Shown one piece after another: positions 30,801 through 60,500 of a stretch of 64,000 bases of DNA. Position 1 is the stretch's first letter. Every line of letters begins with the position of its first letter. The position numbers were made by a program, and so were the translations under genes. Source of the DNA: Macrostomum hystrix (lineage: Eukaryota; Animalia; Platyhelminthes). The stretch lies in contig CATNEN010000024.1 in the NCBI GenBank assembly GCA_950097015.1, positions 310,001 to 374,000 of the forward strand. Reading direction: 5' to 3'. The notes under the pieces are model-generated. The model did not search any database and was not told where the DNA came from. It was given only the letters and a program-made list of their open reading frames with translations.

Positions 30801-32301
30801 AGTATACCTTTAGGGTAACAGACAAGACCAAATTCAAGGGGCATCAGATAAGGGCAAGGGGTAAGGGTTTCTAATAAGAACAAGGGGTAGGGCTATCAGA
30901 TAAGGGCAAGGGGTAGGGCTATCAGATAAGGGCAAGGGGTAGGGCTATCAGATATGGGAAAGGGGTAGGGCTATAAGATAAGGGCAAGGGTTAGTGGCAG
31001 TGATATCAGATAAGGGCAACAGATAAGGTATTAGATTTAAGTATTTAAGTATTAAGATATTATTAGTCAAAATATTCATGTTTATAATAGGTAATCTGCG
31101 CCTTGTCAAACGCCCTGGCCCAGCTAATGCCGCTGTACTATTGCGCCACAGTCTGCGTCAATTCGGGTTTAGTGTCCAGCATTCACGGCTATATGAGAAC
31201 TATGGACGCGTTGAAAGACTACCTGGACGTGCAATCGTGCAAAGAGCTAGTGCGTCAGGACAAGACTCACTACTTCATCATTAGCGTAGTTGAATGCTTT
31301 AAAGATCTTACTATTGATAAGAAGTACCAGGAAGAAGGTGAGTTTATTTTTGTTTTATCCCCAAATTGGGCCGTGTAATGTCTTCATAAAATAAATTGAG
31401 TCTTCGCATAAGAGAGTCTTGACGGCACTGACGGCACGAATCGAAGAGCGGCAGGGCAGGCCGTTTAGGCCGGGAATCAAATAACCAAGAGATAAGAAAG
31501 GGGGGCTGAAGAGTAAAAGGGTAGAGGATGGGCCAGAGGGTAAGAGCTGAAAAGGACGGGGTGTGGAAAGAGAGACGAACAGCTAGCCAATCAGAGACGG
31601 GGGAGAGGAAAGAGAAGTGAAGGTCAGCTAAGAAGTTAAACATAAAAGGGGAGAGACGATAAAGTACAATAAAAGGGCGCGCGAGCGTAAACAAACTTAG
31701 AGGAAGGAGAAGCATAATAATAATTGCATGAGGGCTGCGGGCAATGGTTCATCATTTGGTGACAGTAGACCCGCAGCCAGCGAGGAGGCAATTCTGCCCA
31801 TTCCGCTGATTCCTGAGCACACACGCACACAGATACCATTTGCAGGCATACGCTCACACAGGTGTGTACATCTGCCCTGACTTTCTCATTGTCAGGCAGT
31901 GTACAACTTCACTGTGCATAGGAGGTTGGCCCTTAGGGCGTAAATTGCACGACAAGCCCCCAAGCCTTCTCTCCGCGGCTGCGCCCCAATTTAATGTTGC
32001 GAGACCTTGGTGCGATAGGCAAACACGTTGACCGCTATGTCACGAACCCCCCCCCTGGAAGAAGAATCAATAACAGGCCGTTTTATCAAATAATTAACTA
32101 AACGACTCATACTTTGGCAGCTTATTATGCGTATTCTTTAAATAAATTCAGTGGTTCGTGTAAAATGATAGTAAAAACGTGAAAGTTTTGCGATTAAAGT
32201 AGCACGAATTCAAACAATATTTTCCGCTCGTTTATAAATTTAAGCGCTTTTCTAAACTTTCAGAGTACGTGGCACCATGCCGACCGTCCCTTGACGCCTA
32301 A
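27877..32301 (+). CDS. ATRIP: ATR-interacting protein (ATRIP)-like
   Basis: Exons 27877-30121, 30557-30750, 31091-31337, 32264-32301 with consistent phases. N-terminal PPPKRFR plus acidic DPWGDD..F..ICSQ motif (compare recalled human PPSKRAR..DPFG..DFTADDLEELDTLASQ), then a coiled coil ending LETERAFSVKEI and a helical C-terminal region. Confidence 0.72.
30238..30440 (-). mobile_element. tRNA-derived CORE-type SINE (family B) in ATRIP intron 1
   Basis: Reverse complement has B box GGTTCGATTCCC followed by TGTGCCCTTTAGCAAGACACTTAAC...AAATGGGTACC (CORE-domain-like) and tail CCCAGTCCATGGACTGAACAG. Related pieces at about 49772-49850 (+), 54218-54375 (+), 51915-51985 (-), 40555-40610 and 13450-13472. 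Confidence 0.72.
30845..31030. repeat. 26-bp minisatellite in ATRIP intron 2
   Basis: Unit TAAGGGCAAGGGGTAGGGCTATCAGA. Confidence 0.9.
31385..31428 (-). pseudogene. Degenerate full-length SL exon copy in ATRIP intron 3
   Basis: Reverse complement GTGCCGTCAAGACTCTCTTATGCGAAGACTCAATTTATTTTATG shares TGCGAAGACTCAATTTATT (19 nt) exactly with the 55106-55145 copy. Confidence 0.72.
31712..32055 (-). mobile_element. SINE family A copy in ATRIP intron 3
   Basis: Same tail hairpin, (ATT)n tail and body; head partially deleted. Confidence 0.85.
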
Positions 32302-45285: not shown

Positions 45286-52276
<6,991 letters not shown>

Positions 52277-54375: not shown

Positions 54376-55105
54376 TTGAAATTTTGGTGCAGATTCTTCT
54401 CACATCTCACAATCTACTAAAATCCGGTATTTTCCAAGTGCAATATAAGTGCAAATGTTTTAATTACTTGCAGATTGTGCATCTAATTTATTTTGACCAA
54501 GCTTGCAAAGAATGTAAAAGTACTTAATTCTGTTTCATTTCATTAAAATCTGATATTAGCACCGGATATTAGCTATAATTTTATTTCGCACAGAAGATCA
54601 GATAAAATGGAAATACTTCAATTTTCGCGAATGTTCTTCGTACGAATTAGGCGCAATGTACACCCATAGCTTAAGTATTTAGCTAACTGAAAAACTACTT
54701 CATACTGTTGCTAAGCGCGAACAATAAAATTCTGAGAGTGACCAGATAGTTTAACACGAGTTGCAGGTGAGTTTAAACCTGTACTGAATAGTTTGTTGCT
54801 GTTATGTTTTTAATTTTCATGCACGACTGCGTTGCATCACAACCTTTTAACTACGTATGTCAGACACCAACTCGTTGATCTTAGGCAAATCAATTCCAAG
54901 ATAGATATTCCATTTGGTAAGTTTCATTAAGCTTGAATTCCAGCATGCCTACAAACCCGTAGCTAGCTGAAAACCAACCCAGAGGCGGGGCTGTTGAGCG
55001 ACATCTATGCACTCAGTCAGAAGGCAGTCAACAATGCACATTCCAAATAAACCACTTGTCTTTACTTCAAGTGATAACGATTTACGAAGCGAAGCGAGTT
55101 GTAGC

Positions 55106-55145
55106 CATGCAATAAATTGAGTCTTCGCAGTAAGAGAACGTCTTT
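55106..55145 (-). other. Genomic copy of the spliced-leader (SL) exon lacking a GT donor
   Basis: Reverse complement is AAAGACGTTCTCTTACTGCGAAGACTCAATTTATTGCATG, 39/40 identical to the 3' 40 nt of the Macrostomum lignano SL as recalled (GCCGTAAAGACGGTCTCTTACTGCGAAGACTCAATTTATTGCATG). It ends in the flatworm-typical AUG and is followed by GCTAC, not GTAAG. Confidence 0.8.
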
Positions 55146-55931
55146 GCACAATGGAAGTGGGTTATTTTACCTGAAGGCCTGATTTACGAATGTTTGTTTG
55201 GAATCGATGCGTTACTTCCTACAGGTTTAGGAGTTTTAAAAGAGTTAAAATGCGCTGTATGGATAGACCAAGTTAAAAAACAATAAGAAATCACAATGTT
55301 TGGGATACGCTTGGTACTAATTATGAAAAGTAGTCGCAAACGCATCTGGCCGCAAAAAACGGTACCCAAGACCCCTGAACACTCATTCCCATAGGAGCCG
55401 GAGTATGAATGATTCCTATATATGAAGATTGTGAGATAAATATTGAGAGTTTATTTGAGAGTTTTGAGAGTTTTGAGGGCCCCCCAACCCACCCAGGCCG
55501 CCCCCGGGTCGTGAGTTACAGGATTAAGTGTTGTAATTCTTTCGTATTGTCGGCAGTTCGCCAACGCGGTAGTGGGGGTTCGGGTACGGACCGCCCACAG
55601 CTTGCCGGGGGTAGAGGGGGGAAGCAGCGACCCTCGAGGCGTCCAGACACTCCAAGGAGAGACGGGATGGACTTGGAGCGTACCGACACTCGCTAAGCCC
55701 TGACTGAAGGTTTTGACTGCGAGCGGGTAGCCACTCGACAGCCCAAGAGAGAGGTAGATGATGGTCTGGAAGCGTACCGACACTTCGCAGACTCGAGGAA
55801 GACTCTGGAGGAGAAGGATGATGGTGAGTTTTTGGCAGCAGCCGAGGTTGGGCAGAGGAACAAGATTCGATAATAAAGAAATAAATAACGCGTGAATGCT
55901 TTTCTTACCGGGAGGGGTTGAACGTGGAACT

Positions 55932-55951
55932 CATGCAATAAATTGTGCTTC
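55932..55951 (-). other. SL-like 3' fragment
   Basis: Reverse complement GAAGCACAATTTATTGCATG; the last 14 nt are identical to the SL 3' end seen at 55106. Confidence 0.5.
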
Positions 55952-56537
55952 AGGCTGCGTCGTTTATTATGGATTCTACTTTCTAATGTTGTATTAGCTT
56001 CGCCAACGTTCTCGCCCTAGTACTCTGGCGGCGCGGGGCTGGCCACGGGCAGCGCGCGCAAATAAATAACCGCGTGGGGTGGGGCGAGGGCATAGGGCTG
56101 GACGGGGTAGGGCTAAGCCACGCAGGGCTGGGGTGGGGTCGGCTGCAAGCCGAGAGAGAGAGAGAAGGAGACCGGCTAGCCAATCAGAAGCCTCCTTGGC
56201 GAGAGGCCTGATTGGACTAGCGAGGACGGCACAGGGGACAGCCAATGGGCGAACGACAAACGACAAACACGCCAACGGAGGGTGGCCTAAGCCGGGGCCG
56301 GGCAGAACCGGATTGAGCAGGCGGCTGGGGTGGAAGGGCTGGAGACGCAGGGGTCGGGGCAAGGTCGTTATGAGACGCAGCTCACAACATAAGCGACTAG
56401 GCAGCCTGTCCTGGGAAGCTTGAGAGCCGGAGTTCCGTCAGCCCCCGACTCCCGTCCCAAGGACGAGGCCCCTGCTTGCCACAGCACCACAGCCAAGGCG
56501 ACCAGGGAAGGCAGGAGGACCCTATGGATTTGAGTGA

Positions 56538-56960
56538 CTGATGCCCCTGAGCACGTAAAAGGCCCCACACGAGTAGGGGTAATTCGACCTAGGACCGGCC
56601 AACACTAGAAAACCGGCCTTTCGGACGCACCCCAGTACGAGCAGCAAGGGACCAATGGGCTCAGAGGAGCATCCGATTGGCAGCGAAAACAGCCCCGAAC
56701 ACCTTTAGGCTCTAAGGGAAGCCCCGCTGAAATATGATTTTGAATGCCTGATGCCCCTGAACACCTAAGAGGCGCCACACGAGTAGGGATGCTCAGACCT
56801 AAGACCGACCCCCCCCCAAAAGCCGGCCTTTCGGCTGGACCCCAGTACGAGCAACAAGGGGCCAATGGGCTCAAAGGAGCATCCGATTGGCAGCGAAAAC
56901 AAACCCCGAACACCTTTAGGCTCTAAGGGATGCCCCACTGAAAAGAACACGATTTGGATT
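56538..56960. repeat. Two tandem about 210-bp GC-rich units
   Basis: CTGATGCCCCTGA at about 56537 and 56748; shared CCGGCCTTTCGG, CCCCAGTACGAGCA, GAGCATCCGATTGGCAGCGAAAAC, CCCCGAACACCTTTAGGCTCTAAGGGA. Confidence 0.85.
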
Positions 56961-57207
56961 TTTAACCTCCGGCCTGAATAGGCCATTGGTTTGGAACCCC
57001 GATGGGAAAGATGAAAATTTTTTTATTATTTTAACGGCAAAAAAATTGTTTTTGTCGTAGAAAAGTCGTAATATACTACTTTTGAAAAAATGATGAAAAG
57101 TAGTAGTTGGAGAATTTTATCTTTGTTCTGCCTCCGGCAGCGGTGAGTGGTACTAGCATTCTGGTTCAAAATGCCAGCGCAAAAACTACAGAGTGGCCAA
57201 GAGGGTC

Positions 57208-57226
57208 AAGAGACCGTCTTTACGGC
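57208..57226 (-). other. 5' half of the SL exon
   Basis: Reverse complement GCCGTAAAGACGGTCTCTT is an exact 19-nt match to the recalled SL 5' end and overlaps the other two copies in sequence. Confidence 0.65.
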
Positions 57227-57532
57227 CAATCCTCAAACGAGACAGAGAGCGCAAATGGGGGATGACTCAGGATGGCCCAGAGGGCCTTCTAGAGACACGC
57301 TATATTTGAACTTAAACCCTAGCGGCTGGAGAGAAGCGATCGATAGTAGGGATAGGGTTAAACCCCGCCTCAGATGTACATAGGCAGACGAAGGAAAGAG
57401 ACGAAAGGGGGGTTGGGGTACAATCGTGGAGAGTATCAGGGGCAGGGGGAAGGAGGGGGTGCAGCGATTTAGAAAGGAGAGACACAATCAGAGCAAGTAA
57501 AAACTAATCGCATAACCAAAATTCGCTACACC

Positions 57533-60500
57533 TTGACTTACTTGACTTATCTGCAGGGCGGTCCGATGGACACAGCGGGGAGGCGGAAGTCGCCCATTCC
57601 GCTAATCCCTGAAAGATTCCCTAATCGTTTCGCTGCCGCAGTGCCGCTCGTTGGGGGACGAAGCGCACACCGGCATCAAGGAGACGCTGGGCGGTTTTTG
57701 CCGCCTCACCGCGGATAAAGATATCAAGCGGGAGGATGTTCAGGAAGGCGCTGAGGCCATCGAAGGGGGCGGATGGCTGGGCGCTCATGATCATGCGACA
57801 TGCGCGACCCTGCACTATCCAAAGAGTCTCATGGCAGGTCTTAAGCTGCAGGGCGCTAGCCCAGATCAGTCCGGCGTACGAAACAGCCGGTCTGACCATA
57901 GCAGTGTAGATCCACCAAAGGCGTTTGGGGGTGAGACCCCAAGTGTTGCCTACCGCCCTGCGCAGCTGCGCCAGAATCGCAAAGGCCTTTTTGGCTTTAG
58001 CGTGGACATGAGGAGTCCAGCTGAGCCTGTGATCGAGCGTTATGCCCAAGCATTTAGTTTGCTTCTAGAAGGTGATGTCCTTTCCATACAGCTGGAGGGG
58101 GCGAATATGCCATTTGTTTTTGCTGGTGAACATGATCGCCGCTGTCTTAGACTCGGAGAGCTTCAGACCACAGCGAGTTGCCCATCTTTCAGCGTTGTTA
58201 ATAAAGTTTTGCAGAAGGTCTCGGAGGGCCTCTGGTACCGGGCCAGATGCCACTGCCGTAACATCATCCGCGTAGCCGACCTTTAGGATGGGATCCGGCT
58301 GAGAGTCCCGTAAGAGCTCGTCGATAACCATGTTCCAGAGAACTGGTGAGAGGACGCCGCCTTGTGGGCTACTTTTACAGACAGTGACCGTCCGCTGGTG
58401 TCCAAGAAGGTGTGCCGTAGCAGTGCGGTGGCGGACCATGTACATGATCCACCTCCTAAGATGCGAATGCGTGTGCCGCATACGTAGGGCCCTGTCAAAC
58501 GCCTCGAAGAGAACGTTGTCGAAGGCCCCATCAATGTCCAGGAAGATGCTGGCTGGGAGCAAAGCCGTTCCCGAGGACGGCCTTTTCCAGAGCGCCCACC
58601 AGAGCGTGGAGAGCGCTTTCGGTGGAGCGTCCCGACCGAAAAGCGTGTTGATTGTCGCTTAGCGGCATATTTTTCAGCTCCACAGAGAGGAGGCGCCAGA
58701 GCACCAGTCTCTCCATCAGTTTGACCATGGTGGAGGTTAGACTAATTGGCCGGAACGATTTAATGGAATGGCAGTCCGGGCGGCCTGGCTTGGGGATAAA
58801 TACCACCCTCGCCTCGGTCCATGCCTTCGGGACGGGTCCACGAGGTTTGCCAGCCGGAAGGTTGCCAGCCGAAGGTTGCCAGCCGGAAGGTTGCCAGCCG
58901 AAGGTTGCCAGCCGGAAGGTTGCCAGCCAGAAGTTTGCCAGCCGGAAGGTTGCCAGCCAGAAGTTTGCCAGCCGAGAGGTTTGCCAGCCGGATGGTTGCC
59001 AGCCAGAAGTTTGCCAGCCGAGAGGTTTGCCAGCCGGAAGGTTGCCAGCCAGAAGTTTGCCAGTTTGTCCCATTCCCCCCATTATTCAAGAGTTTGACTC
59101 AACTCCCTCTCCCCTCCATTTAACCGTTTCAGCGTTGATTACTTTCAGGTAGACAATCAGAAAAGCCAGACGTGACTAGTCATAAAAACATTCTCCTTTC
59201 TATTTCCAGATCAGCTAGTTGCTCAAAAAACTTCAACGAGCCAGCCGAGTCCCCGAGCCCTTATTTCATATTGATTTCGATTGAGAAGACGAAATTATGC
59301 TGCAGAAATATGTAACAGTAATTATATTCAGGAACTCAGAACCCCCACCCCCTATCATGAGTTCCCAAAAACAAAAAAGACAGAAAATGGTATTACACAT
59401 TATTACAGACTCTTGTACAAAACTATTATTACTGCTTTATTACTACGCTATTACACATGATGGCACGTGCAAAGAGTTGGAACTGTTTGAGGAAAAGTGC
59501 GACTCAATACAGTAAAAAGAATTCGGTGCAACAGCGCAACAAAATGTTTCTGTGTAACTCAAGCCGGGAAAAACTGTATTACAAAAAGCAGCACCACAAA
59601 AAGGTAGTTAAGCATTCGCCATCATCAGCTTCTGGGCAAAAGCGACTCTAAAAGTTGCTAGTGCTTACTTGTATTAAGTATAATTCATCCTTCTTTAATT
59701 ACTTCGGAACTTTTAAAAGCATTTTCATTATTAAGAGTGCCACCCAAGACCAAGATAGTAAAAATAAAATACTGAAATAAGGGACCGAACTGCAAATGTA
59801 AGAGAAACTGACAAAAACAGCAGCACCCTGAAAGTTTGAACTCGTCTAACTTCTGCCTCACAATTTGCAACGAATGTGATTATAGAAAGATTATCCCCTG
59901 GTCTTTTACCTGTAAAACAATTATGTCACTATTTCACCGCAGTATTGACAGCTTGTCATTTGATAAACAATTGCCAGCTATTACTTGCTCAAGTGATGGG
60001 CGATGCCCCTCAGTAAGGAGCGCAACGGAAAGTCAGCTGGCAGTCCACCGTCATTCCAGCGTTGCGTGATGCGCAGGACCATCGCGTTGCTCTGCGCGTA
60101 CTTCTGCCTCTCTTGTGGCACTTCGCCCGCGGCAGCTCGCTGCATCAGTAGGCGCTGATGGTCTTGTTCCTTTTTGAGGCAACTGAGTAGCCTGAAGACT
60201 TGCGGACTACTGCACGCGAGCACGACTTGAAGCCTTCGATGCCAAGCTTCCACACAGTTGTTGGTCCGATGCCGACCCTCAAGCGTGCGCTGACATTCCA
60301 GAAGGCTAGTTCAAACCTTGGTTGCCGCCTCTGGCCATTTGGAAGACGCCGACCAATCCATTGATCCTCAAAGTAATTCGCCACCGGCGTGAGCTGCTCT
60401 GGGAAACCAGGCATCATTATCAGGTTGTCAAACGATGTGGCGACGGAGTCAATGGGCACAAATGCCAGAGCAGTGAGGCAGCGCATCCAGAGCGATATTT

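Follow-up and report, generated by a model that had tools for sequence, protein, structure and literature searches.

The window, as we call the whole 64,000-nt stretch of Macrostomum hystrix DNA analysed here, carries on its minus strand at 55145-55106 a stretch of 40 bases, 39 of which are identical to the published Macrostomum spliced leader (SL). This bears out the 40-nt match that had been noticed in a first, sequence-only reading of this DNA. The minus-strand letters are AAAGACGTTCTCTTACTGCGAAGACTCAATTTATTGCATG, followed by GCTACAACTCG..., and correspond to nucleotides 6 to 45 of the 45-nt leader, with the ATG of the SL as the last bases (55108-55106). The sole mismatch is a G to T exchange at 55138. 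The leader sequence given in that reading proved correct against the published leaders. The SL of M. lignano, given as a 35-mer (PMC8629364), agrees with the window copy at 34 of 35 positions. For the SLs of M. hystrix (43 nt) and M. cliftonense (45 nt, beginning GCCGTAAAGACGG; both PMC10468722 supplement), the agreement is 39 of 40. An exact match to the 29-nt SL core occurs once in the window and in none of 100 shuffles. Behind the ATG, the window copy continues with GCTACAAC and not with the donor GTAAG, and the open reading frame starting at this ATG comprises only 8 codons (MATTRFAS*); the missing donor and the length of the reading frame had both been noted before.

Of the 62 SL core matches, 30 were read together with their flanking sequence. 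The 49 nt after the SL ATG recur behind the SL at seven other places. An all-against-all BLAST with 12-kb flanks defined a repeat unit that reaches from about -312 nt to +79 relative to the first base of the SL core and ends with ...GTAAAGACA; beyond ...GACA, the sequence of every copy differs (BLAST; alignment A1). In all aligned copies the unit starts with TGTAGCGA and ends with GTAAAGACA, which gives the TGT...ACA termini of a long terminal repeat (LTR). The LTR unit is common to at least 8 of the copies read, and at least 20 near-full-length copies are present genome-wide. Four other copies are flanked by 5-bp target-site duplications (TSDs; AGTAC, TGTGG, GCTAT and CCACC). Two 5' LTRs are directly followed by the primer-binding-site (PBS)-like motif TGGCGC(C/A)CGAACG (TGGCGCCCGAACG), the partner LTRs of these two copies lie 5.0 and 3.6 kb downstream, and a GGGGGAG polypurine tract (PPT) precedes both 3' LTRs. 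This arrangement, PBS-like motif after the 5' LTR and GGGGGAG before the 3' LTR, is found in the paired copies C7:8556098-8561478 and C7:5516297-5520154. Genome-wide, LTR pairs are 4.4-6.8 kb apart, several of them at 6.66-6.84 kb. We take the PBS-like motif to resemble the textbook tRNA-Lys3 site; a search of the window and 25 loci gave no tRNA that would match it.

The 5.4-kb C7 copy contains frameshifted internal ORFs, and fragments of a Pao-type pol lie between the paired LTRs. Two of the C7 ORF fragments matched Peptidase_A17 (Pao; PF05380) with 52 and 47.7 bits (cut-off 22.3; E-values 1e-13 and 2e-12). An RVT_1 match on the C7 ORF fragments (4e-6) stayed with 27 bits under its cut-off of 29.6, and DUF1759 and Peptidase_A2B gave weak matches in the same copy. 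An integrase had no match in this reference copy, which is degraded and frameshifted. Based on the Pao-type domain matches, we assign the SL-bearing LTR to a BEL/Pao-type family of LTR retrotransposons. Within the LTR of about 398 bp, the SL is positioned near the 3' end, 49 nt away from it and just upstream of the PBS.

In the window, this LTR is split into two parts. The 5' part, LTR-A (57530-57208, minus strand; BLAST, alignment A1), starts with TGTAGCGAA at 57530 and consists of a U3-like region together with nt 1-20 of the 45-nt leader (GCCGTAAAGACGGTCTCTT, up to 57208). This part of 324 nt is 84.9-91% identical to the sequence that immediately precedes the SL in six other copies, lies in the window 2.07 kb upstream of the SL and ends with ...GGCCGTAAAGACGGTCTCTT. 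Between the two parts we found a composite insertion of 2,062 bp (55146-57207, minus strand; BLAST and direct reading), which is bracketed by two 14-bp TSD copies that are identical at 13 of 14 positions. The first one, AAAGACGGTCTCTT (57208-57221, minus strand), and the second one, AAAGACGTTCTCTT (55132-55145, minus strand), were read directly, and the latter holds the single mismatch to the SL. A TSD-flanked insertion of this kind accounts for the only mismatch of the SL match as well as for its abrupt beginning at the 5' side, and we conclude from the arrangement of the sequence blocks that the 2,062-bp insert landed inside the SL.

The insert itself is a low-copy repeat (57207-56395 plus 55524-55146) with three other copies at 72-83% identity, and it includes a 210-bp tandem duplication. 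Nested within it is an 861-bp repeat (55529-56389, minus strand; ends read directly and supported by copy matches) with TG...CA ends and a 4-bp TSD (CTTA), of which at least 40 copies exist at 82-97% identity. This nested repeat, which is probably a solo LTR of another family, has its own degenerate 3' half of the SL, CTGAAGCACAATTTATTGCATG at 55953-55932, with CAATTTATTGCATG at 55945-55932. Retrotransposons that specifically target SL RNA genes are known from trypanosomatids (SLACS, CZAR and CRE) and from C. elegans (NeSL-1). The window resembles these systems in that a retroelement and an SL are physically joined and that an element landed inside an SL copy. In contrast to them, the three other copies of the insert are not beside SL matches, on which ground an SL-site-specific element of the NeSL/SLACS type was rejected, and the SL that was struck was already part of an LTR.

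Downstream of the insertion, the relic SL (55145-55106) is followed by the LTR tail (55105-55057, minus strand), a U5-like stretch of 49 nt that ends with ...GTAAAGACA and is 88-98% identical to seven other copies. The adjoining 14 nt, AGTGGTTTATTTGG (55056-55043, minus strand), are flanking non-LTR DNA, as the other copies diverge exactly after ...GACA. This border also decides about a hairpin (TCACTTG/CAAGTGG, 55074-55052) and a motif, GGTTTATTTGG (55053-55043), which the sequence-only reading had likened to the Sm-site region of flatworm SL RNAs. Both strings are indeed present at these positions, yet 5 of the 7 bases of the 3' arm of the hairpin and the whole Sm-like motif lie outside of the repeat unit and do not occur in any of the other copies, so that the region is flanking DNA and not an Sm site. 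The same reading had named as its possible weak point that the leader sequence was wrong and the segment an ordinary repeat; the first part did not apply, as described above, yet the segment does lie within an ordinary repeat.

Internal retrotransposon sequence of the family was not detected in the window and the next 10 kb (74 kb altogether), and a partner LTR is not nearby. A TSD around the window LTR itself was not found, with CAAGG upstream versus AGTGG downstream, and the LTR is designated as a solo LTR because these 74 kb lack internal sequence. On this basis, we classify the window LTR as standing alone, i.e. as a solo LTR. Directly upstream of it are frameshifted reverse transcriptase ORFs (57621-59082, minus strand; RVT_1 2.8e-19 and 6.6e-8), which belong to a different retroelement with a LINE-like C-terminal tail. 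They were rejected as the pol of the LTR family, giving an E-value of 0.55 against the family RT and no DNA match to the reference copy. In another part of the window, a minisatellite at 50398-51602 is made up of 52 copies of a 23-bp unit with 96% matches.

The sequence-only reading had offered two explanations for the leader copy, of which the first was a relic SL left by reverse transcription of a trans-spliced mRNA. The idea of a relic SL was supported only for a scar borne by the LTR, the one of a 5' end of a processed host-mRNA copy was not, as the SL is an internal part of the LTR. Such a copy of a trans-spliced host mRNA, reverse-transcribed by LINE machinery and inserted here, would fit with the window SL ending exactly at the splice junction. 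SL-bearing retro-inserted RNAs do exist elsewhere in this genome, where at the locus L005 the SL heads a LINE with an APE endonuclease ORF. At the window locus, however, the 49 nt behind the SL are the LTR tail common to all family copies, with homology stopping at ...GACA, and the sequence upstream of the SL likewise is part of the repeat. A processed retrocopy would be expected to have the body of an mRNA behind the SL, a poly(A) tail, a long TSD and a parent gene that provides an AG acceptor; at this locus, the 8-codon reading frame is followed by no long ORF, poly(A) tail or downstream coding body. The retrocopy test proposed in the earlier reading, a BLAST of the downstream DNA, returned no parent locus preceded by AG and matched only a duplicate of 75 nt 9.7 kb away. 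The duplicated stretch lies just downstream of the LTR (54962-55036) and is repeated with 92% identity at G000:C24:374784-374857, past the window end. As LTR sequence is shared on both sides of the SL, the host-mRNA explanation is refuted for the window locus, and we rate it as very improbable.

The second explanation was a variant or pseudogenised SL RNA gene. To evaluate it, we compared the window copy with the true SL RNA genes of this genome. Genome-wide, there are 27 exact matches to the SL core, and 19 of them continue with GTAAGACACCG and represent true SL RNA genes. These are organized in tandem units of about 11.6 kb on the contigs C15, C17 and C42, plus one copy on C1. In the 109-nt gene, CUUAC and the GUAAG donor are paired in stem I, behind which come hairpin II, AUAUUUUUAG and hairpin III; in flatworm SL RNA genes the Sm-type site is located between hairpins II and III. 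The window copy shares the leader exon with the true gene (109 nt also in M. lignano; PMC8629364). In contrast, GTAAGACACCG with its GTAAG donor, stem I with CTTAC, hairpin II, AUAUUUUUAG, hairpin III and the position in 11.6-kb units beside U1 are features of the true genes that are all lacking at the window locus, which has neither the three-stem fold nor the Sm-type site. The folding z-score was -4.02 for a true SL RNA gene and -0.04 for the 109-nt stretch of the window, which is at the level of shuffled sequences, as is that of an intact LTR copy of the same family (+0.6). A covariance model (CM) built from the true SL RNA genes of this genome scored the 19 true genes with 113-136 bits, and exactly these 19 loci reached that level genome-wide. 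The window locus obtained 25.4 bits in this search, which had also been suggested in the sequence-only reading; this corresponds to the contribution of the exon alone, is far under the score of the true genes and left the locus out of the genome-wide matches at E <= 0.01. It also lies outside of the 11.6-kb SL/U1 arrays. An Rfam search of the window gave no match, which is uninformative, since Rfam also misses the true M. hystrix SL RNA gene.

As an SL RNA gene, the locus would have a longer exon with a donor at 55063 (GAA followed by GTAAAG). Indeed, GTAAAGACA at the LTR end looks like the true intron start GTAAGACA and is conserved among the copies. With p about 0.6 this likeness lacks significance, the ends of LTRs are conserved in any case, the Sm site and the hairpins are absent, and the sequence past GACA differs in every copy. 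Together with the shuffle-level folding and the low CM score, these findings led us to reject the variant or pseudogenised SL RNA gene, which we consider extremely improbable.

The search for true SL RNA genes yielded several further observations. In the one unit of the C15 array that was scanned, a full-length U1 snRNA gene (Rfam RF00003, 151.7 bits; L006:1838-2000, minus strand) is located about 290 nt upstream of the SL RNA gene on the same strand. The lone SL RNA gene copy outside of the arrays (L001, G000:C1:16047903-16048011) has TCATC instead of GCCGT as the first five leader bases, and its 1.5 kb downstream are 97% identical to the array unit, so that it looks like a displaced array piece starting inside the SL. 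A different tandem array on contig C39 (G000:C39:12,667,874-12,754,124) has a period of about 927 bp and at least 70 copies, with strays at C39:8860922, 11342966, 12402384 and 13173946. Its unit contains an SL-like exon variant ending with CTCTTTTTTGCATG, behind which the canonical donor and the beginning of the intron, GTAAGACACCG, are exactly preserved; the BLAST match extends over SL nt 8-45 and the first 21 nt of the intron at 89%, and the CM gave 47.7 bits. Judged by these matches, the array may be a second family of SL RNA genes, for which it is a candidate, or else a satellite that arose from a fragment of an SL gene.

SL-like sequences besides the true SL RNA genes are numerous. Allowing up to 3 mismatches, the last 25 nt of the SL have 236 matches in the genome, while the reversed pattern used as control has 0. 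The window itself contains another copy of the SL at 31385-31426 (minus strand), which is more decayed and reads GCCGTCAAGACTCTCTTATGCGAAGACTCAATTTATTTTATG, with AAGACATTACA behind it. Its upstream sequence resembles the L002/L030 repeat family, and it is probably another LTR-borne relic. At L005:482-1545 (minus strand; G000:C7:9274918), a complete SL with one mismatch lies 62 nt before an ORF of 320 amino acids with an APE-type endonuclease domain (Exo_endo_phos, 3.6e-11), and we interpret this locus, by its domain content, as a LINE that has an SL as its 5' end. The full SL, together with shared upstream sequence, is also found in at least two more families of repeats (L002, L030, L028, L029 and L054, at G000:C3:9792961, C7:6865140, C2:3775227, C2:8228715 and C1:19308508/19312663). 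They end 10-17 nt past the SL in ...ACA, and the C1 pair is part of a 4,155-bp tandem duplication.

The boundaries of the LTR-borne SL bear on how it came into the element. Homology between the LTR and the true SL gene is limited to the exon plus or minus 3 nt (query 294-342), and in all families whose flanks are unrelated, the SL is present from base 1 up to precisely the splice junction. When the post-SL sequences of eleven loci were compared with the SL intron, the alignments were no better than those of shuffles (p = 0.14-0.99), and a derivation of the post-SL bases from the SL intron was rejected, as the local alignments were at shuffle level. Since neither an SL-less ancestor of the LTR nor an ancestral AG acceptor (...AG joined to GCTTCAACTCG) was found genome-wide, the entry route of the SL is one that we infer. 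Taken together, it is very likely that the SL match is a dead copy of the leader within a BEL/Pao LTR, which most likely goes back to a trans-spliced element RNA and was split here by an insertion.

In detail, an RNA of the element would have received the SL by trans-splicing and would then have been reverse-transcribed up to its 5' end. Reverse transcription would have put the SL at the U3/R border of both LTRs of the new copy, resulting in a once-complete 45-nt SL copy built into the R/U5 end of the LTR, which would from then on have been copied passively along with it. Later on, the 2,062-bp insertion hit the SL and duplicated 14 bp, leaving the U3 together with SL nt 1-20 at 57530-57208 and SL nt 6-45 together with the 49-nt tail at 55145-55057.

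The same LTR anatomy could also result from an entry of the SL by capture at the DNA level or by a template switch to SL RNA that was unspliced. The LTR and the true gene resemble each other in three or four bases before the SL (TTTG/CTTT), and in the L030 family the post-SL bases are weakly similar to the intron start (9 of 11 aligned). However, homology stops at the exon boundaries in all families read, the intron likeness is not significant (p = 0.14-0.99), and the sequence of the SL promoter and of the U1 array is absent from the LTR, so that we regard an entry of this type as quite unlikely and favor the trans-spliced element RNA.

How the SL was maintained after its entry can be deduced from the family copies. 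In the main subfamily, the same two substitutions in the SL (...GATTCAATTAATTGCATG) occur in both LTRs of paired copies. Across LTR copies, the SL columns are diverged to the same degree as those of U3 and U5 (93.7% versus 93.4% and 93.8%). Substitutions that are inherited in both LTRs and an SL that diverges like the rest of the LTR rule out that the SL is renewed by trans-splicing in each transposition cycle. At the level of sequence, the comparison of these copies shows passive inheritance of the SL within the family, with no sign of special constraint. The window copy in particular is most likely inert debris, as it is cut off from its U3 and has no donor, Sm site or SL RNA fold, and no function of the locus is evident from its sequence.

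A different possibility is that the DNA-encoded SL was kept because it is useful to the element or to the host, to which we assign a low probability. The persistence of the SL in many families and copies, given the 236 25-mer matches versus 0 in the control, speaks in favor of it. The SL sits at the would-be U3/R border in the BEL/Pao family and at the 5' end of a LINE, and unrelated retroelement families with an SL may profit from an encoded leader, or solo LTRs may hand the SL exon on, although there is only a small chance of either. One way of use would be a leader that mimics trans-spliced mRNAs, which seems unlikely. In the other one, solo LTRs would donate an SL-bearing first exon to downstream genes via the GTAAAG at the LTR end. 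There is a precedent in Echinococcus, where a solo LTR splices in cis to a former trans-splice acceptor (PMC4558846); for M. hystrix we give this variant a slim chance. Against a functional SL stand three points: the SL columns evolve no slower than the remaining LTR, substitutions of the SL are tolerated in the main subfamily, and the window copy is 2 kb away from its U3. If usefulness did hold true, the scar would not be debris but a module that is in use.

Scars of the SL in LTR and LINE elements are, as a kind, already known from flatworm genomes. In parasitic flatworms, 597 SL-like loci in LTR and LINE elements have been reported and the same explanation has been proposed for them (PMC12582326; Mol Biol Evol 2025). 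Like the copy described here, these loci have the leader without other features of an SL RNA and are embedded in retrotransposons. They come from parasitic species only, contain partial leaders and were discarded in one paragraph; in contrast, the host studied here, M. hystrix, is free-living, its family carries the complete 45-nt SL, and the place of the SL in the LTR as well as its passive inheritance were worked out. The relict SLs of dinoflagellates (PMC5585692, PMC3229502) are likewise SL copies in DNA that go back to trans-spliced RNA which was reverse-transcribed. While those are found where processed retrocopies of host genes begin (5' end) and have often undergone serial rounds of trans-splicing, the M. 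hystrix copy lies inside an LTR and spreads with the transposon. Within the genus, the 'SL RNA' of the M. lignano ML2 assembly was found to be mis-assigned; it lies at the 5' end of a gene that codes for a protein (PMC8629364). Both cases are genomic Macrostomum SLs without the canonical three-hairpin fold and are not SL RNA genes, but the M. hystrix window copy maps to a solo LTR. A recent survey of LTR retrotransposons in M. lignano does not mention SLs (PMC12801592).

New are the assignment to a BEL/Pao family, the exact place that the SL occupies within the LTR, the evidence that it is inherited passively, and the insertion nested in it. For the genus, these data mean that most of the matches to the SL in Macrostomum genomes are scars of transposons. 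With 236 SL-like 25-mers compared to 19 true SL RNA genes, masking is needed in SL-seeded gene searches, in the mapping of SL reads and in the calling of trans-splice sites. Given the entry route that we infer for the SL, the scars would show that RNAs of retroelements are trans-spliced in free-living flatworms and are able to complete retrotransposition afterwards, and they provide a datable marker of trans-splicing and retrotransposition events.
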